The notes under the pieces: generated by a model | What the model was told of the DNA's origin: nothing | What the model saw: only the letters and a program-made list of their open reading frames with translations | The model's database searches: none | Origin: Saccostrea echinata | Taxonomy: Eukaryota | Direction of reading: 5' to 3' | Assembly (NCBI RefSeq): GCF_033153115.1 | Contig: NW_026889750.1 | Span: 42,160,001 to 42,224,000 of the forward strand | DNA length: 64,000 nucleotides | Part shown: positions 36,723-48,719 of the stretch, piece after piece | Layout: each line of letters starts with the position of its first letter | Numbering within the stretch: position 1 is the stretch's first letter | Made by a program: the position numbers and the translations under genes

Positions 36723-39700
36723 CTACTTTCCCTCGTATTCAGGACAAACTGCAAAGAAACACAAAGCAAATATTTAATAATAATAAAAGAAAATCTTAAA
36801 TGAAAATGAAGGTACATGTTTTAGACCCCTTTACATAAGGTAGCATTGAAGAGTAACAGAGGGAAAGCGGAAAGTTTCACACATACCCTGCTGCTGAAGA
36901 ACATTAACTTCCGTCACGTCATTTCCTGTCGTCGTGTATGTGAAGGTGTAGAAGCAGTTGTTATTGTTAAATACTTGGCACATTTTGGAGTTTGCAGAAC
37001 GTTGAGCTTCAGATAAAAATGAAATAAAAATATTATTATAAAATCAATGGGTATTTTCTTACTTTAACTATGTATCTGATATAACATGCAGGATAAAGTA
37101 TTCTTAAAATTCTCCAAAACTTATCTTTATAAAATAATGTTGAGATTCTTTGTGAATTCATGGTATGTTGATGATAAATCAATTACTCACGAATGAAAGG
37201 ACTCAAGGCTTGAATATTATATGATGCACAATTGATTCTGCATTCTCTCTCGTCTTTGTAGCCACTGAAGTCACTGAACGATGTACATGCCACACAGGAT
37301 TTAAGTTCATTACATTTTCCACCACAGTTCTGAAAATTAGTGTTTAACAAAAAACAAATTAACAAAGAGGTCATTTCGACCACAAAGCTCACATGAGTCA
37401 TATTTCTCTTCTCCTTCACCTTCACCTAGAGCTATCTCCGACAGTCACTAACTTCAGCATCTTGATTCTACTACAACACAGGGTCGATTATATATGTAAG
37501 TATGACTAGAAATTGACTTCCTGTTCTGTGGAAGAATTTAAGAATACATCAACTTCTAAATCAAACTTGAAATTTATTGTTTTCCTCCGAAGCTGTGCGA
37601 AAATGACTTAACAAACTTTCAAGAATCTACATTATTTGAGGATGATAACATTTACATCTGGCCCTGATGTTTTTAAGATGTTTCAAATCCCACATATATA
37701 CCTTTGTAAGAGTTTGCCACCTATTATACCTCTCCATTATCTCAGAAGCCAGGAATTGAAAAACTGACCTGAGTCTCTACCTAAGTAAGGTGAGCTACTA
37801 TAAGGTTATATTAATGTTGCTTTGTTATAGCATGAACAGTGTACCAGTGCAACACAGAAAATAACGATGATCATGATGATGAATTCAACAGAACTTTATT
37901 ACTGCAGAGGAAAAAAGAATGTTTATACCTGGCACTGTTCACAGGTTTGTCCGTAATACCCAGGGTTGCACTCGCACATTCCGCATTTACACATTCCATT
38001 GTTACTGCAGACATTCTACCATGAAAAAGAATTAAAATATTTATCACAATATTAAACTAAAATGCATCAATAACATCCATATTTTTTTTTAAACGTTAAC
38101 GTTTGATATGAGATTTTTAAAATCACTTGACAATATTTTGTAATTTTATAAGGAAGGTTCGTGTAAGCGATAATAAATGAATTAATTTCAAAAGCGCAGA
38201 TTTAACGTTATATGTCCTCGAAATCGGATGATCGTTGGGGATACGTCTAGTCCCCGTGACTTTGACCTTCTAGATCTATAAGAATTGAGGGAGGACAAAC
38301 ACTCTGTTCTTTAGCCACCTTCACGGTAAAATGTTCGGGATTGGAACAAATGAAAGCTTGAATTAATTTTAATATGTTGAATATTCATTTTTTCTTGTTT
38401 TTTTTCTGCATTTCACAAAATAAAGTGGAATCGTGGGAACTCCTCCAAACAAATAGAAATAACGACATAACTTACACCGCTTGAATCCGATGAACAAGTT
38501 GCGTTTTGTGGGCAAAGTTCTGTTGGGCAGTCTACAAAGAGTCATATAAAATCAAAGATGGAAATAAAAATAGTACAGACTTACACAGATATTTATAACA
38601 TTGGATTTTACACTAACCTTTCTTCATGGAAACTTCAAAGAATCTGTCATGAATAATTTGGAATTTCATTAAACACCCTTGTTCATCTCTGTACGTGCAC
38701 TTGTTAACATTGTCTGGAGTAAAACAAAGGAAAAAAGTTAAGATTATATTCAAACTTTAAATGGAAGTTAATGAATTTCATGATGATATTGTAGATTATA
38801 TTATATATACCAGGGAATCCTCGGACTCGTCTGAAAGTTGGTGCAAAACGCCTTCCTCCACAGAACTGGCGACACATTGCATTAGGCATAGGTGAACCAG
38901 AGAACACAAAGCAGTCCACACATTTCCCGTAATCAGGACATTGATCCTTACAATTCTAATAAAAATAAAAAAAATGTTTTTAAAAAACATTCATTCGATG
39001 AAACACAGGTGTTAACCTAAAGAGGGGGGGGGGGGGAGAGGGGGGGTTACCTCGCATTCAATGTCATCAGCAGGAGATCCAAGCGGAAGTTTATTCAGTG
39101 ATTCTTCAGGTATGGTGAATCTTGTACCCATTCCGCCACCCGCGGCCCCAATAGGGATTCCGCCTCCCATTGGTCTTATAACTGGCTTTTCTACCACGAC
39201 AGGTGCCCCGGTGGTAGTGGGTCTATCAGCGTCTGTACAGACACACTTGCTGTTGCCTTTGCTACCTTTGGAATCTTTCCATTTGCAGGTAGGGGCATTT
39301 GTTTTCTAGAATTTTCAATAAACAGTATAATTTAAGATCTTTTTTTTTTATTTTCGTTATAACTTTTATTTCTCCAGTGGAGTTGAACCAACATACCTTT
39401 GTGCTGCATTTACAAGGTTCAATCCCGGAGGCAAAGATTCGAAGAACTTGTTTTAGTTTGCCGATTTTGACCCTAAGTTTTAACTTCTTTTTCCTGCAAC
39501 ACAAGTGCTCTCAGAGGTCGAGTACATGTATGTGCTAAATATAGATATAATAATACACTATAAATAGAAATTACAGAATCTTCTTATGAAAATCTAGTAG
39601 AGATTTTGTACACTTGACAATTTTAAGACATTTAAAATCTAAATACAACTCACTCTTTCGTTGTCATATCCTTCAAAAATTTCACCTTTACTGTTATGTA

Positions 39701-40613
39701 AAACTGTCAAATAAAACTCAATTAATTAAAAATGAAATTCAGTTTTGATACGTTATACAATAAAAAGAATACACTGAAATTCTAAAAATGATGCAGAAAC
39801 AAGTTTTTCTGTAAGGAACCGTTTCTTTTTTGTTAAGAATACTTTAAACCTAAAATAGATAATTATATCGATAAAATTAATTGCGTCTTACCTCTTCTCC
39901 TCGCTTCAATTTTTTACATTTTACTTTGTATGGATTTTTCTTTGAAACAACTCTAGAAGTGAAAATATCAAACGTAAAAAAATATCTTTCGCATATTAAT
40001 TATTATGGCTAAGCATTTACAGACCGCGTGTAATAAAGTCTTAATTCCCCGTTACCTCTTACTGCACTCCACGTCTACGGTGACCTGTACTGGGTCGTCA
40101 TTTCCAGGTTTTGGTAAAATAACAACAGCTGTGACCTGTGAATATCAAATCATCAAATTCAAAGAATTTAGAGGAAATATACGATTTGTGGTCAATAAGC
40201 AAATGATTGGGTGTAACAACTAGGAAGATGAGAGATTTTGTAGTGTAAACATGGACAGTGTAGATATACCTTCTTTTTCCTGGACATTGTATCAGGTACC
40301 TTCACACCAATTCTGTGATCGGTTACACCACCTGCATAAGGTAAAATATAATAGTTTTGATAGAGACAATAAAGAATTTTCCGTTTTTTTTTTAACATTA
40401 CCCGACTTTTACTCGAAGTAGTTCGCTGTTTCAGACACCAATATTTAATATCATGGGTGTGTTTGCTGTAATAGTTAGTTTCATCCAATATACCTGTTAA
40501 TGTGTTCTCTATAATTGATGATATGCATTGTTAATATGGGGCTTACCTTTACGACCTGCATACTTGTTGATATCATTCCCTATAATAACCGAATCGGAAA
40601 ACCCCCTGCTCTG

Positions 40614-40669
<56 letters not shown>

Positions 40670-42094
40670 TTAAAGGAAAATAAAACATTCTGTTCATAAA
40701 TCTGACTAATTTTGTGAAAATAAAAAAAAAGATGTACATGTAGTTTGAATATTATTTCAAGTTGACTTACTTTAATGTAGGTTAGCTTTGTAGGCCAGTG
40801 GACAAGACTTCCAGGGCACTTCTGTCTCATTTTGAAATTTCTTATGTACATACAGCGAGGACCGGAAGTAAAGTTCTATTAAAAAAATATACATTTTCAG
40901 AATATAAATGTTAATAATATTGTGAAAAATCCATGATTTTCATATGATATTTTAAGAGAATTTTAGTGTCTTTCTCGTAAAAGTATTTCATAAGTGGCTG
41001 TATAACAATACAAGTGTGTCGTCTTCAACATCTGCAGCACTTCGGAAGTGCTTGAGTGGATCCTACCGAGTATTCGCAGCCGCTATCTACCCTTGACATT
41101 GTTAAATACGTGCTGATAAATGTGTACAAATAACCCCAGGCCCGTAGGAAGCAATTTCACTATGAAGGGGCACAACTATACATATAAAAATTTAAAAAAA
41201 AAAAAAAAAAAGTTAATCAGACGTTTTTATAGAGGGGCACAAGCATATAGTAGTTATGTTATCTATAGTATTCTATATATCGGCAAAATTATTGGGGTAT
41301 GGGCACCCCCCACCCCCCCCCCCCCCGGTTCCTACGGCCATGAACCCCTTCTATTAAGTATAAATACCATCTACTATCTCGACTATAATTAATGTTAAAA
41401 AAACGTTCTCAACTCTATATGTGTTGGACTCGAACAAGTGCAAAATACAATCTCCATATCGTTACTCAACTCACTGATGAGAAACTTAATATTCGAAAGT
41501 CCCAACCCAAAGAATGAAGTGCATTATTGCTGTTTATTACCATAAATGTAGTCTTCAAATGAACAGATTTATTCAATATGATGGAACATGCAAATACTCA
41601 AAACATAAAACAGATTTACATGCTTTTTCCTTATGTTTATTTATTTATTATTTATTTATTTATTTCTTGAACCCACGTGAATGCCACTTATTGGAATTCA
41701 CAAGCTTATGATAAAATGTTTATGATAATATCTGATGATGATTTTTTTGAACTCAGACCCCCCCCCCCCCCCACTAATACAAACACCCTACCTGTATCAA
41801 ATTTTACGATTAGTTCAGAATTAATTATACAAACAAATATTTATCAAACCAAACTGACCGCGGCTCCACACCAGATACATCTTCCAGACTCGCTGTTTCT
41901 CATGCATTCTTCACAGGTGTTCCCAAAACAATTTTCTTCTTCTGAAATGTATTGGGGGAATTGCAAATAAAGTATTGGCTTCGTTATCTCGTAAACTGAA
42001 GGCATTATTTTACTACAGTACATCAATGCTTAAACTTACCAGACACCGCCATACTGAACAGCAAGGCCAACGAAAGAAGCCCGAACACTCTCAT
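36723..42094 (-). CDS. Secreted integrin-beta-like protein (523 aa, 17 coding exons): signal-PSI-hybrid (no beta-I)-EGF-like/linker-beta tail-EGF-beta tail, no TM
   Basis: Exons 42094-42040, 41941-41859, 40875-40771, 40610-40547, 40331-40270, 40135-40056, 39952-39892, 39703-39654, 39493-39397, 39305-39051, 38946-38811, 38713-38618, 38531-38476, 38015-37929, 37329-37191, 37006-36887, 36748-36723. All GT-AG and phase-compatible, 1572 nt. PSI: CFGNTCEECM..CIWC..FTSGPRC..C. I-EGF: CSNNGMCKCGMCECNPGYYGQTCEQC. Beta tails: CPDYGKCVDCFVF..CTYRDEQGCLMKF and CNELKSCVACTSF..CQVFNNNNCFYTFTY. Ends VCPEYEGK*. Candidate 5' UTR exon donor at 42894. Confidence 0.88.
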
Positions 42095-44063
42095 CTTGAA
42101 GAAAGCTAGATGGACAGGAAAAAATACAATGTACATATAGACAGAAAATGGAGAAACTGAAAAGGTTATCTTAAATCTCAAACAAAGGGTCCTGATACCA
42201 CCCCCTCCCCGATATACCCTGTGTGGCTTTTTGACTTTTTTAAAAAATATTTTCCCGCATTAATTGATAAAAAAAAATTCCATACTATTATAATAACGTT
42301 ATTATTGTATGGACTTTTTTTTTTATCAATAAAGAGAATTATGTAAAAACGTCAGGTACCTGTACTGTGATCTTATCAATACACTATGAATTCGGAATTT
42401 ACCTCGACAAAAATCCTGATTCATTTTGTGTACATCACCTTGTTTTATATACATGTTTAGAGTGGGATCGAATTTGAGTGAACACCTTCATTATCATAAT
42501 TACTCAGTTCAAAACACAATTAATTACATTAGGTACAAATGACACCTGAAAAACTATTCAGATTCCTTTTTAAAATGCCCTGAATTCCGGTCTTGTTTTA
42601 TAGTGGAATTTTAAATGGAAACCTTATGTTGTACTTCCTTATCTAAACTGTATTCAAGAACGAAGCTTTTTTTAAACATTTACACGCATGTCATGCAAAA
42701 TACCATTTTCTTATCAAAAACCACTCTTTTATGTTGATTTAGTTACCTGAAATTTAAATTTAAGAGATGACCAATTGTCAATTTGAACTTCATTGAAAAT
42801 AAGTTTGCTTTTACAATTTGTAATGCTTAAATTATAGTATTTTTGAAAAGATTCGACAAAAAAGAGGAAAAAAGGAACAAGTATCTATACATACCAGTTT
42901 GTTCCAGAGACGACTGATTAATGACTTGTATACATACAGTTCCACTAGAGCCACTCAGGGCTCTTTGGCACGTGGGCAGGGATCAAGTTAATCAGGAAAT
43001 GGCTTTCAGAGATATGTGGTAATCAGCTGGCCAAGCTGTTCGCTTATAGGCCAGGAAAGGGTCGGAGTTAACAAGGGTAAACAAAAACATGTTTACATGA
43101 TAGAAAATACAAATATTTGTCACAAAATTGACACATTTTGCCGTATTATGAAAGAGTCATGGGTACCGTTAGACAAGGTGTGAATGGGTTAAGGGAGATT
43201 GTGAAATATTAATTGTGATAGCAGGTACTGTGATGTTTTCAAAAAATTACGCAATCTTTGGGTTTTGAATGTTTCTGATTACCATCACTGCAGTACTGTA
43301 ATTTAAGAAGACTTTGTGTTTCCAAGCCGTTTTATCATTTCAGGAGTTTGCCATGCACGCGTTCATATATACTGCAAGAATATATGTATTACATTATATC
43401 CTCGGACACTCTTGGATCATACTTATTCGCTTGTCCCTGCCTACGTATGAATTGTAGATATTTGAGTACCATTTAGCGTAATCTCATAATGGCCACTGAA
43501 GAGTTGGATAGTCAGCGGAAGATGCTTGTTGAATGAAGAGGTGTAAATAATCTGTGTTCACAATTAAAATATCATTTCAAGCCTGCTTATGCTGCATAGA
43601 AAGGTTATAACTTTTGGGGGTTTAGAGAAATAAAAGACAGTAAAAGATATTAAGAACGTTGTAGACGTAATTTTTAACATGAGGTCTGTAGACGCAATAC
43701 TCATCTGGATCACTTTGACTTAACTGTTCTTCTTCAGATTTCCCCCCTCAATATTTCCATGAAAAAAATTGACCCCATTCCTTAAAAACCCAAAGATTTT
43801 CCTTCCTCTTTATCGTATGTAACATATCCACTTTCATCCTAGTGACCTTGACCTATGATATTGACAATTTTTTCCATAAAATCTAACGAATTTTAACTGA
43901 AAGCTGTCGCGTAGGCTGACACTTTTATAGGACAGTCACTTTCGTCTTTTTTAGCTCATCTGAACGAAGTTGGACGGGAGCTTATGTAAAACCCTCGGCG
44001 TCGGCGTCAGTGTCGGCGTCCCAGGTTAACGTATTTAGAGCAGATTTCTTTTCAAGTACTTCT

Positions 44064-45193: not shown

Positions 45194-48100
45194 ATATCAT
45201 TTAGCAAAGCGATTAAATAGTAAAAATTCTTGTTTAGAAAATAAAGCTAATCTTCAATTAGAAAGCAAAAGCTATAAAAAGATACTGGATTCATGTATAA
45301 AAGATTATAGAAAAGGCATGACAAAAAACTTGAAATCACTACGCTCTACAAATACTCGAGATTACTGGAAAATTTTAAATGGTCCAAATATGTCAAATAA
45401 ATGTGCTGTAGATATTAATGCTATGTATGATTTTCTTAAGGGCATCAATGAAGGTTATGATAATGACGTAGAAGATGGTGATACTTTAAGGTTCTCAACA
45501 GACAGCCATGAATGTGATGATTTTTTGAACTTTGAGATTAGTGAGGAAGAAATTTTATTTGCAGTAAAAAAATTGAAAAATAATAAGGCCGCAGGCTACG
45601 ATCAATTGTTAAACGAACATATTTCATCAACAGTATCTATTTTTTTGCCTGTATACAAAAAAATGTTTAATTTGATTTTTGATAGTGGAGTCATTCCAGA
45701 CGAATGGCTCACAGGTATTGTCAAACCGATTTTCAAAAATAAAGGCGACCCAACAAATCCAGAAAATTATCGTCCAATAACACTTTTAAGTTGTCTTGGT
45801 ACGCAGCTAGGTTAAGGACTCCCATATATACGTCAGTCTATGCCGAGGTTCGGGAAAGCTATTATGACGTCACGTTAAAGCAATGCAAATGAATCTCGAT
45901 AAATAAATACTATATGTTCTTTTTAAAACAAACTAAATACTTTCGTTTCTCACAAATATTATAAAAATAATTGAGTGTGCAACTTATCTTGCCATAATAG
46001 CACTTAGCGTTTGTAGAATGAAAGCCAGCTTGATCTCGCTGTACTTACTGAGATGACGTCATTTCTTAGTTTGACACGCAGTTTCTCTGTACTTGAGGCG
46101 TGGATCAAGCTTTTATCATAGCTTGTAAAAATAAAATTAATGACGAAACACGCGTAGTCCGACCAAAATAGAGACGTATTCTGAAATATATTAATCTACA
46201 TTATATTGTCAAACTAAATTGATCATGTGTAGACATAATATATAAGCCGTAGGGAGCACATCTGTACAGTAACGTGCTAGAATGACAGGTCCAGTCCTTC
46301 GAAAATGTCAAAAAGTTCAACGATATCCGCTTCACTATAAATTCTGAATTTTTAAACACGTGTAGCTATTATTCCTACTATTCTGAAAAGTGCTGGGAGC
46401 TGGTTGTGCATTGTTTATTTATTTCGTAATGTAACATTATTCTAATGTGTATTATATCTATGTCTGGAGTTTACAGAAAGACGGCAAAATTTTACAAATT
46501 TCCCGAGCACGAGGAAGTTGCTCCCAGCACTTTTCATGTTAAGGAATTTGTCTCAAAGAAAACAAAATAAATTTTATAGCGGAAAGAGGCCCGTATATCG
46601 TTGAACTTTTACGATCTTTGTAGTAGTACATATATGTTCTAATTGTAAACCTGTCACGTGACAAACAGCTGATGTAAGCGAAGTCGCATTGGCCGAACTC
46701 AGCAGAGACCCGATATATACAAGTGCACACACCACGATTCACATTCATCAAAACTAATGCTGTTATAAAAAATATTAAAATTGTATTCATTTTCCCTGAA
46801 TATATTAAGGCGTATATTTCATGGGCGTCCTTAACCTAGCTGCGTAAGCTTTTTACCTCCATTTTATGTAAACGTTTGGAATGCTATGTAGAGAATTTAA
46901 ACCTTATAAGTGAAAGTCAAACTGGCTTCAGGAAAGGATATTCGACCTTAGATAATATACTGACTTTACATTTTCTTACAAATATGGTTATGTCTTTCAA
47001 AAAGAAACTTTTCTGTGCTTTTGTTGACTTTAAACAGGCATTCGACACGGTGTGGAGAAATGGGCTTTGGTACAAATTGTTAAATAATGGCATTAGTGGT
47101 AAATGTTTTACATTTATAAAAAATATGTATAATGGAGTTAAGTCCCTTGTGACTATGAATGGTTTTTCATCTGAGTTTTACAACTGTAACATTGGTGTAC
47201 GCCAAGGAGAAAATTTATCGCCTCTCTTGTTTTCTATGTATATTAATGATTTAGAAGAATTTCTCATTAGTAAAAATGTGCATGGGCTATCCTTTAATGC
47301 AAGCAGTTCAAATACTGTAGAAAACCAATTTTGGCTGTATTTTAAATTATTTATTTTGTTCTATGCTGACGATACAGTTATGATGTCTGAGTCTGCTGAG
47401 GGTTTGCAACACGCTCTTAATGAGTTTCATTCGTATTGTTTACAATGGAAACTGAATGTCAATGTAGACAAAACAAAAATTATGATTTTTTCGAAAGGTC
47501 CATCTGTAAAAAATGTATTCTACTACAATAATTCTGTTATTGAAATTGTGAATGAATTTAAATACCTAGGTATACTATTTTCCCGATCCGGTTCATTTTG
47601 TAAGGCTAAAAAACATTTATGTGAGCAAGCTCAAAAAGCCATGTATGGTGCTATACGAAAAATTAGACAATTTAATTTACCAGTAGATTGCCAGCTTGAT
47701 TTGTTCGATAAAGTTGTCACACCAGTACTTTTGTATGGATGCGAGATATGGGGTTTTGAGAACATTGAAATAATTGAACGCGTCCATCTCAAGTTTTTGA
47801 AATATATTTTTAATCTGAAAAGTAGTACTCCTAGTTATATGGTTTATGGCGAAACGGGTCGATTCCCTTTGTATATAACGGTGTATATAAGAATGATATC
47901 ACATTGGGCAAAATTACTGGTAAGCCCTGAAAATAAGATTGTTTATGTTACATATAAGAATTTATTTGAACAGTTTTGTTCAGGAAGTCATAAGAACCCT
48001 TGGATTTTATGTATTAAGAATATACTTGATACTTGTGGCTTCTCAAATATATGGAATGAACAGGCCTTTTTAAATATAAAATGGCTAAAAATTATAGTTG

Positions 48101-48719
48101 AACAACGTCTTAAAGATCAGTACATACAGAAATGGCAAAGTGATATGCGCGATTCGTCTAAAGGTCATATGTATAGTATCTTCAAAACAGAATTTGGATT
48201 TGAAAAATATTTAGACTTTCTACCTAAAAAATTTAGAACAATTTTAATTAAATTAAGAACAGCAAATCATCATCTCCCAGTTGAGACTGGGAGATGGTTT
48301 GGAATTCCCAAAAATGATAGACTCTGTAATATCTGTAATAATGGACAAATAGCTGATGAGTATCACTATATTTTAGAATGTCAATTTTTCTCAGAATGCA
48401 GAAAAAAGTATCTACCGGGTAAATATTGTAATAGACCAAATTTCTACAAATTCTCAGAATTGTTGTCAACTGCTGACTCCAAGGTATTAATCAAACTATG
48501 CAGCTACATAGATAGGGTATATGAACAAGTCTGTCCTCCATAATTATTATTATTATTATTATTATTATTTTTTTTTTTTTTTTTTGGTTACTTTATAATT
48601 TGAATGTATTTCCGCCATTTCACGTGTATCTTGCATATTGTTTTTGTATATATTGTACATAGAACCTCATGTACCATTAATTGGTTTGAGTGAATAAATT
48701 GAACTTGAACTTGAACTTG
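45194..48719 (+). mobile_element. 5'-truncated non-LTR retrotransposon (LINE); RT plus C-terminal CCHC; ORF split by a MITE
   Basis: RT motifs NYRPITLLS, QTGFRKG, FVDFKQAFD, GVRQGENLSP, YADD, KYLG and a C-terminal CNIC..DEYHYILEC. 3' AATAAA plus (TTGAAC)n tail. No endonuclease domain present. Clade (RTE-X or L2/Crack-like) not determinable by eye. Confidence 0.95.
45802..46844. mobile_element. 1043-bp non-autonomous TIR transposon with TA target duplication
   Basis: 24-bp TIR cgcagctaggttaaggac(t/g)cccat with one mismatch. TA at 45800-45801 and 46845-46846. Excision restores CLGKLFTSILCKRLE. Confidence 0.95.

Follow-up and report, generated by a model that had tools for sequence, protein, structure and literature searches.

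A transcribed oyster gene descended from an integrin beta subunit, without the beta-I domain and the membrane anchor

Can the leg of an integrin beta subunit persist as a protein in its own right, once the beta-I domain and the membrane anchor are gone? The question is raised by a gene on the minus strand of a 64,000-nucleotide stretch of the Saccostrea echinata genome (contig NW_026889750.1, positions 42,160,001 to 42,224,000; hereafter the window, in whose numbering positions are given). To our knowledge, every described integrin beta carries the beta-I domain within the hybrid domain; ITGBL1, which consists of EGF repeats only, is the one secreted derivative to have been given a name. The gene analyzed here, which we call the headless integrin beta gene, is a real, single-copy, transcribed oyster gene descended from an integrin beta, and orthologues also occur in the other sampled genera of oysters. 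The best overall explanation, which we consider probable, is that it encodes an integrin-beta-derived oyster protein devoid of a membrane anchor, proposed to form an extracellular stalk of two modules.

The gene runs from an ATG at 42094 to a stop codon ending at 36723. Joined together, its 17 exons give 1581 nucleotides, that is 526 codons and a stop, with GT-AG borders throughout and compatible phases. Coding spans are the exon spans of Table 1, except that exon 1 codes over 42094-42040 and exon 17 over 36748-36723; no run of N in the window falls inside the gene. Exon-by-exon searches were carried on until a database protein identical to the joined model was found, and that protein then served as the reference: XP_061183768.1 of S. 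echinata, annotated as "uncharacterized protein LOC133191981", agrees with the model letter for letter.

Transcript evidence comes from four public runs, X1, X2 and X3 for organism A and X5 for the related organism B; they represent three samples of two studies and contain about one quarter of the words sampled from the 5.8-kb gene stretch. The contigs of these runs are spliced and therefore represent RNA. Fifteen of the 16 junctions are read in contigs of X1, X2, X3 and X5 at exactly the modelled positions; the sixteenth (40610/40771) was deduced from record positions within the 1232-nucleotide contig X1-3, where exon 3 occupies positions 978-1082, its start being the sum 563+97+50+61+80+62+64+1. 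All four runs contain the junction between exons 5 and 6, over an intron of 134 bp (40136-40269). At the other end, contigs extend unspliced past the stop, from 36748 to 36580, into a 3' untranslated region (UTR), so that no downstream transmembrane (TM) exon follows, and two AATAAA signals lie 3' of the stop (36562-36557 and 36535-36530). Word depths of the RNA contigs are in the hundreds in the two studies, contig depth not being usable to rank expression. A preliminary description of this DNA had proposed 17 phase-compatible exons, a direct fusion of the two hybrid halves across the 134-bp intron and a protein ending where the TM helix of canonical chains begins; RNA bears out the junctions and the 3' end of that model.

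Three minor features of the transcripts and of the gene may be mentioned here. A loose end of an X5 contig at 42106 matches the window again from 42896, so that the ATG exon is probably preceded by a non-coding first exon, with an intron of about 790 bp between the two. In exon 12, the match of X2 and X5 contigs breaks off at 38640, where more than 200 further letters follow that begin like a diverged copy of this exon segment; an allele, an artefact of the assembly graph and a rare isoform are all conceivable sources. Introns 3 and 2 contain long A runs and C/G homopolymer runs (40620-40668 and 41180-41333), and these repeats were skipped when RNA contigs were placed.

The same protein is found in other oysters. 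A search with exon 10 returned an Ostrea edulis protein of 520 aa, with 70% identity along the exon, and searches with this protein and with the family alignment gave four clusters, which contain oyster sequences only. The architecture is shared by orthologues of 520-541 aa in S. cucullata (526/527 aa, 88% identity to XP_061183768.1, "uncharacterized protein LOC134229802", isoforms X2/X1), O. edulis (520 aa, 66%, "integrin beta-6-like"), C. gigas (541 aa, 65%, "uncharacterized protein LOC105341060") and C. virginica (523/527 aa, 50%, "integrin beta-1-like", isoforms X2/X1). Annotated isoforms differ by 1-4 aa, and none has a membrane anchor. In the five species, which represent three or more genera, the open frame has no interruption and hardly varies in length. 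At 50-88% overall identity, none of the 42 cysteines varies among them, and the share of invariant positions varies by region: 52% in PSI, 39-45% in the hybrid, 42% in the first beta-tail, 23% in the second and 11% in the linker. Searches of the S. echinata assembly with exon 11, exon 12 and the whole protein found no further copy, and the gene is thus single-copy; the possibility of a gene family within this genome was rejected on the same searches. Outside oysters, no relatives were retrieved by the exon-10 search (1.84 billion representatives), by two word-seeded searches or in the ESM Atlas, where the matches are integrin EGF fragments and ITGBL1-like clusters only; the ITGBL1-type look-alikes are without tail domains.

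From its N-terminus, the predicted protein presents a hydrophobic stretch, a PSI domain, a hybrid sandwich without beta-I, a remnant of the first integrin-type EGF domain (I-EGF1) followed by a Gly/Pro linker, a first beta-tail, one I-EGF and a second beta-tail. The N-terminal stretch is the only hydrophobic one according to hydropathy and is likely a signal peptide. On the whole protein, Pfam detects Integrin_B_tail (PF07965) with 67.8 bits in two stretches (cut-off 33.6) and EGF_2 above its cut-off (24.3 bits; 30.4 exon-wise); it detects neither the beta-I family PF00362 nor the cytoplasmic family PF08725, whereas a canonical beta scanned alongside has all of these. When exons are scanned singly, exon 14 is recognized as the I-EGF and the tail copies fall on exons 11+12 and 15+16, while PSI_integrin alone stays below its cut-off. 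The DxSxS motif, which would mark the metal ion-dependent adhesion site (MIDAS), is absent from the 526-aa protein. A hidden Markov model (HMM) of the full-length canonical integrin beta, run on the six frames of the 64-kb window, finds the exons of this gene and nothing else, without any beta-I or TM/cytoplasmic exon; in the whole genome, PF00362 matches are confined to contig C28.

Profile comparisons place the remaining parts. Against the Protein Data Bank (PDB), the family profile retrieves human integrin beta-1 with an E-value of 1e-25, profile positions 396-528 aligning on beta-1 residues 595-725; this segment of beta-1 comprises I-EGF4 and the tail and ends at the Cys-Pro immediately before the membrane. 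We also compared the family with 26 canonical betas by profile-profile alignment with hhalign. This gave a probability of 99.2% (E 8.4e-20) for the I-EGF with the second tail, 95.4% (E 1.7e-8) for the first tail alone and 90.6% (E 1.3e-6) for PSI (residues 19-70). The PSI region has seven cysteines and a predicted local distance difference test (pLDDT) score of 72-83 in the second of two AlphaFold2 (AF2) models described below. Seven cysteines are also found in canonical PSI domains such as that of beta-3. One intact I-EGF and a three-cysteine remnant in exon 10 are counted, versus four I-EGFs in receptor chains. The two beta-tails share 22% identity with one another and 30-35% with the canonical tail, and the duplication must therefore be old. 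The stop codon comes five codons after the Cys-Pro where the canonical TM helix begins. The order of domains outlined in the preliminary description, from the signal peptide through PSI, the split hybrid and the degenerate EGF with its linker to the two tails around one I-EGF, with neither beta-I/MIDAS nor TM helix, therefore stands in all its parts.

Six hybrid exons and the linker exon have no Pfam match when taken singly; the hybrid assignment therefore rests on gene structure and fold. We used as a comparison a canonical integrin beta gene of the same genome (contig C28, about 10073900-10093620), which was mapped with the canonical HMM and whose splice sites were read. All exon borders shared by the two genes fall within one codon of each other and have the same phase (Table 1). 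HMMER, hhalign and MAFFT all place residues ~124-216 on the C-terminal half of the canonical hybrid (hybrid-C). An alignment of 65 sequences shows no variation at Cys147, Cys162 and Cys214 and very little at Cys216; these positions are those of the canonical hybrid disulfide and of the Cys-x-Cys border to I-EGF1.

Two structure models bear on the fold. Model 1, built by AF2 with four orthologues only, has an overall pLDDT of 46 and contains a beta sandwich at residues 100-210 with a pLDDT of 61-87. In Foldseek it comes closest to integrin beta chains (E 8.6e-9), along with PSI/hybrid/I-EGF fragments of beta-2, and an exhaustive VIA search aligns it with integrin hybrids at Z 7.5-8.0, both halves being spanned (chain residues ~59-434). 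Model 2, based on the 65-sequence alignment including canonical betas, reaches a pLDDT of 72-91 over PSI and the hybrid. Residues 19-216 of this model align with integrin beta headpieces at Z 11-12.5 over 172-195 residues, bridging the beta-I gap (chain residues ~1-445), and with engineered fragments lacking beta-I (5e6v_A, Z 11.4; 2p26, Z 11.0). The identification of residues 71-216 as a hybrid domain is thus supported by cysteines, gene structure and fold, the sequence by itself being no proof.

Compared with an integrin beta receptor chain, the protein has PSI, hybrid and beta-tail; it has neither a beta-I domain with the DxSxS MIDAS, nor four I-EGFs, nor a TM helix with an NPxY tail. Compared with the ITGBL1 type, made of tandem integrin-type EGF repeats only, it has a single I-EGF and adds PSI, hybrid and two tails. 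It cannot be an integrin receptor chain, forming an alpha/beta head or binding ligand through a MIDAS, because without beta-I there is neither an alpha-propeller interface nor a MIDAS, and both membrane anchor and cytoplasmic tail are missing. Names such as "integrin beta-1-like" and "integrin beta-6-like" should not be used for the orthologues, since the protein lacks beta-I, the four I-EGFs and the TM/cytoplasmic tail.

The history of the gene may be read from its exons, because its introns still match those of the parent gene. In the canonical gene, a single exon carries the last strand of the N-terminal half of the hybrid (hybrid-N) and continues into the first beta-I strand, and about 10 kb, with seven exons, separate this border exon from the first hybrid-C exon downstream. 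We propose that a single deletion, from the middle of the exon at the hybrid/beta-I border to the intron before the first hybrid-C exon, would have removed the beta-I domain entirely and allowed the hybrid sandwich to close up from its two halves. One deletion is the simplest account because exon 5 keeps the canonical acceptor and ends near the domain border, and exon 6 is an intact first hybrid-C exon. I-EGF1 to I-EGF4 may have collapsed into exon 10, where a flexible Gly/Pro linker connects what is left of I-EGF1, its beginning, to the final residues of I-EGF4. The unit formed by I-EGF4 and beta-tail would have been duplicated in tandem, and exon 13 keeps the junction: its beginning resembles that of the TM exon and its end that of the exon preceding I-EGF4. 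A truncation would account for exon 17, which starts as the TM exon and stops after eight codons. From the sequence, we thus infer an origin by deletion, collapse of the EGF stalk, tandem duplication and truncation.

Canonical cytoplasmic tails end in Tyr-x-Gly-Lys, and the last residues of the protein, Tyr-Glu-Gly-Lys (36723-36746), as well as the corresponding ones of the orthologues, are similar to this end and are aligned with it by MAFFT. This likeness might reflect a truncation by internal deletion in which the old stop and 3' UTR were kept; the match is too short to be given weight.

What could such a protein do? The preliminary description suggested that it may be a matrix or immune protein or a decoy. 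The hybrid domain is polybasic in all five species (isoelectric point 10.1-10.4), and the net charge of hybrid-C is +11 to +18, versus a median of -4 and a range of -12 to +2 in 58 canonical betas. The first beta-tail contains a very conserved arginine-rich stretch. Outside the cell, the protein would form a disulfide-locked stalk of two modules, PSI-hybrid and tail-EGF-tail, joined by a flexible linker. The polybasic former hybrid domain, perhaps together with the conserved basic loop of the first beta-tail, would bind polyanions; sulfated glycans of mucus or matrix, acidic shell-matrix proteins and microbial surfaces are candidate partners, and the EGF/tail module may serve as a spacer or a second binding site. 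A secreted polyanion-binding scaffold is the function that we favor, tentatively, and as a suggestion that has somewhat less than an even chance of being right. With slightly more reserve still, the legs of an integrin beta may have been turned into a new kind of secreted protein, in which the emptied hybrid became a polybasic polyanion module and the duplicated tail a second binding loop.

Several observations weigh against this account. Secretion is predicted from hydropathy, and the polyanion-binding role is suggested by charge and conservation. The absence of relatives beyond oysters holds only at the sensitivity of word-seeded searches and one exon search. The likeness of the hybrid region in sequence is not significant taken alone (hhalign P ~0.12; HMMER ~2 bits), the sandwich of model 1 ties with many unrelated Ig-like folds (Z 7-10), and model 2 is partly circular, canonical integrins being part of its alignment, and is best read as consistent with the hybrid assignment and not as independent evidence. 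One may then ask whether residues 71-216 are an unrelated Ig-like sandwich, recruited between PSI-like and tail domains, as the missing Pfam match, the insignificant profile score and the equally high scores of generic Ig-like folds with model 1 would allow. This seems very improbable to us: six consecutive exon borders match the canonical gene in position and phase, the hybrid cysteines are invariant or nearly so in the 65 sequences, three programs agree on the same hybrid-C placement, and structural matches to integrin chains cover both hybrid halves. Less credible again is a transcribed relic, that is, an integrin beta duplicate decaying without a function of its own. The parts that define integrin function are indeed lost; however, frames of equal length are intact in five species with every cysteine retained, conservation follows the domains, and RNA contigs of high word depth come from two studies. 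An artefact of assembly or annotation (a collapse at 40136-40269, for example, or an overlooked last exon) has a negligible chance of being the explanation. We found no evidence supporting it, and the same junctions and 3' end are present in independent RNA contigs of two organisms, the same architecture being predicted in the independently assembled genomes of four other species.

A more serious alternative concerns the function of this same protein. Instead of binding polyanions, it may act in trans as a modulator or decoy of integrins, in the manner of ITGBL1, its legs binding alpha or beta legs on haemocytes or epithelia and thereby shifting the equilibrium between bent and extended forms or blocking matrix binding. 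PSI, hybrid, I-EGF4 and beta-tail pack against alpha legs and against one another in bent integrins, and these leg domains are exactly the ones kept here, as in the chains matched structurally. ITGBL1, a secreted protein of integrin-type EGF repeats, is reported to inhibit the binding of integrins to extracellular matrix and would provide a precedent. On the other hand, the hybrid surface differs in charge from that of canonical betas by about 20 units and the region of I-EGF1-3 has been lost, so that many canonical leg contacts are unlikely to be kept. We therefore regard integrin modulation as unlikely, although as a possibility to be taken seriously, and retain the secreted polyanion-binding scaffold as the favored reading.

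How does this protein relate to known systems? With canonical integrin betas (the S. echinata gene on C28, human beta-1 and beta-3), it shares homologous PSI, hybrid, I-EGF4 and beta-tail domains with the same cysteine framework, the same intron positions and phases in the shared parts, and an ectodomain ending at the same Cys-Pro. Unlike them, it has no beta-I/MIDAS, no I-EGF2-3, no TM helix and no NPxY tail, retains I-EGF1 only as a remnant, carries a second beta-tail and has a polybasic instead of a mildly acidic hybrid. Vertebrate ITGBL1 is a secreted, cysteine-rich protein derived from the integrin beta stalk, without beta-I or membrane anchor, and made of integrin-type EGF repeats only; the contrast drawn with it in the preliminary description is a fair one. 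Both proteins derive from the beta stalk and lack beta-I and the membrane anchor; however, the oyster protein keeps PSI, hybrid and tails and has nearly lost the EGF repeats, so that the two retain complementary parts of the beta leg. They are independent derivations.

The nearest structural precedent of the oyster protein is a set of engineered human beta-2 PSI/hybrid/I-EGF fragments (PDB 2p26, 5e6v, 5e6w), from which the I-like domain was excised and in which PSI and hybrid still fold. The oyster model aligns with these fragments at Z 11.0-11.4 over 177-195 residues, and they are also among its Foldseek matches. The fragments are laboratory constructs, whereas the oyster excision is natural, was kept and is followed by the linker and the tail-EGF-tail module. 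We found no paper on the oyster protein or on an integrin beta lacking beta-I, searching with accession and locus names and with various phrasings. The sequence itself is already public in RefSeq; what is new is the recognition of its architecture, of its origin and of the conserved charge switch. The gene offers a natural counterpart to the engineered-fragment experiment: beta-I has been excised where it meets the hybrid, and the hybrid, with a new charge, has been retained and conserved among oyster genera. It is also a dated, stepwise example of the passage from a receptor chain to a soluble protein. If the favored reading is true, this would be the first natural case of an integrin hybrid domain existing and functioning without its inserted beta-I. 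Should partners be found, they may point to a component specific to the oyster lineage, in matrix, shell, mucus or humoral defence, or to a new extracellular tuning of integrins.

Table 1. Exons of the headless integrin beta gene in window coordinates, with their counterparts in the canonical integrin beta gene of the same genome
Feature	Position	Strand	Canonical counterpart (phases)	Evidence and remarks
Probable non-coding 5' exon	42895..42930	-		X5 contig end; AC..CT intron 42894-42106 inferred
Exon 1: short 5' UTR, ATG 42094, hydrophobic signal-peptide-like N-terminus (18 codons + 1 nt)	42040..42105	-		RNA junction 41941/42040
Exon 2: PSI, first half	41859..41941	-		Pfam PSI_integrin weak alone, 14 bits
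Exon 3: PSI, second half, and first hybrid strand	40771..40875	-	Second PSI exon (0/0)	Phases 0/0; end point as in canonical exon; RNA junction
Exon 4: hybrid domain, N-terminal half	40547..40610	-	Hybrid-N exon (0/1)	Phases 0/1; beta strands in both AF2 models
Exon 5: final hybrid-N strand	40270..40331	-	Exon with hybrid-N end and beta-I start (acceptor only, phase 1)	Phase-1 acceptor in common; early donor without canonical counterpart
134-bp intron replacing the canonical beta-I exons	40136..40269	-		RNA junction; about 10 kb with seven beta-I exons in canonical gene
Exon 6: hybrid-C, first exon	40056..40135	-	Hybrid-C exon 1 (0/2)	Phases 0/2; both ends at most 1 codon from canonical; Cys147 invariant
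Exon 7: hybrid-C	39892..39952	-	Hybrid-C exon 2 (2/0)	Phases 2/0; Cys162 invariant
Exon 8: hybrid-C	39654..39703	-	Hybrid-C exon 3 (0/0), with exon 9	Phase-0 start as canonical; one extra, phase-2 intron after exon 8
Exon 9: hybrid end to Cys-x-Cys border motif	39397..39493	-	Hybrid-C exon 3 (0/0), with exon 8	Phase-0 end as canonical; Cys214 invariant, Cys216 nearly
Exon 10: I-EGF1 start remnant, poorly conserved Gly/Pro linker, end like I-EGF4 exon	39051..39305	-		Linker 11% invariant
Exon 11: beta-tail 1, first half	38811..38955	-	Tail exon 1 (0/1)	Integrin_B_tail positions 1-30, 19.3 bits; phases 0/1
Exon 12: beta-tail 1, second half	38618..38713	-	Tail exon 2 (1/1)	Integrin_B_tail positions 49-69, 18.3 bits; phases 1/1
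Exon 13: duplication junction	38476..38531	-	TM exon start (phase 1), first codons only	Starts like TM exon (Asp-Cys-Pro, phase 1), ends like exon before I-EGF4
Exon 14: I-EGF, equivalent of I-EGF4	37929..38015	-	I-EGF4 exon (0/0)	EGF_2 30.4 bits (cut-off 22.1), I-EGF_1 25.2 bits; phases 0/0, canonical borders
Exon 15: beta-tail 2, first half	37191..37329	-	Tail exon 1 (0/1)	Integrin_B_tail positions 2-36, 24.7 bits; phases 0/1
Exon 16: beta-tail 2, second half	36887..37006	-	Tail exon 2 (1/1)	Integrin_B_tail positions 45-81, 20.1 bits; phases 1/1
Exon 17: final 8 codons and stop (36748-36723), then 3' UTR with AATAAA signals	36530..36748	-	TM exon start (Cys-Pro, phase 1)	Phase-1 start at Cys-Pro

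The longest open frames of the neighboring genes at 28531-36274 have no Pfam match, and no functional link is seen between the headless gene and either these neighbors or a reverse transcriptase frame on its other side. The latter is a 555-aa open reading frame on the plus strand at 46876-48543 that matches RVT_1 with 105 bits and belongs to a retroelement about 4 kb upstream of the headless gene.

Elsewhere in the genome, the canonical beta gene on contig C28 has two alternative last exons (C28:10093369-10093616), each with a complete membrane-distal NPxY-type end and its own stop, and two cytoplasmic isoforms are therefore possible. The same contig carries, at 4.98-5.19 Mb, a tandem cluster of at least five to six further canonical integrin beta genes, recognized by matches to beta-I and beta-tail exons.

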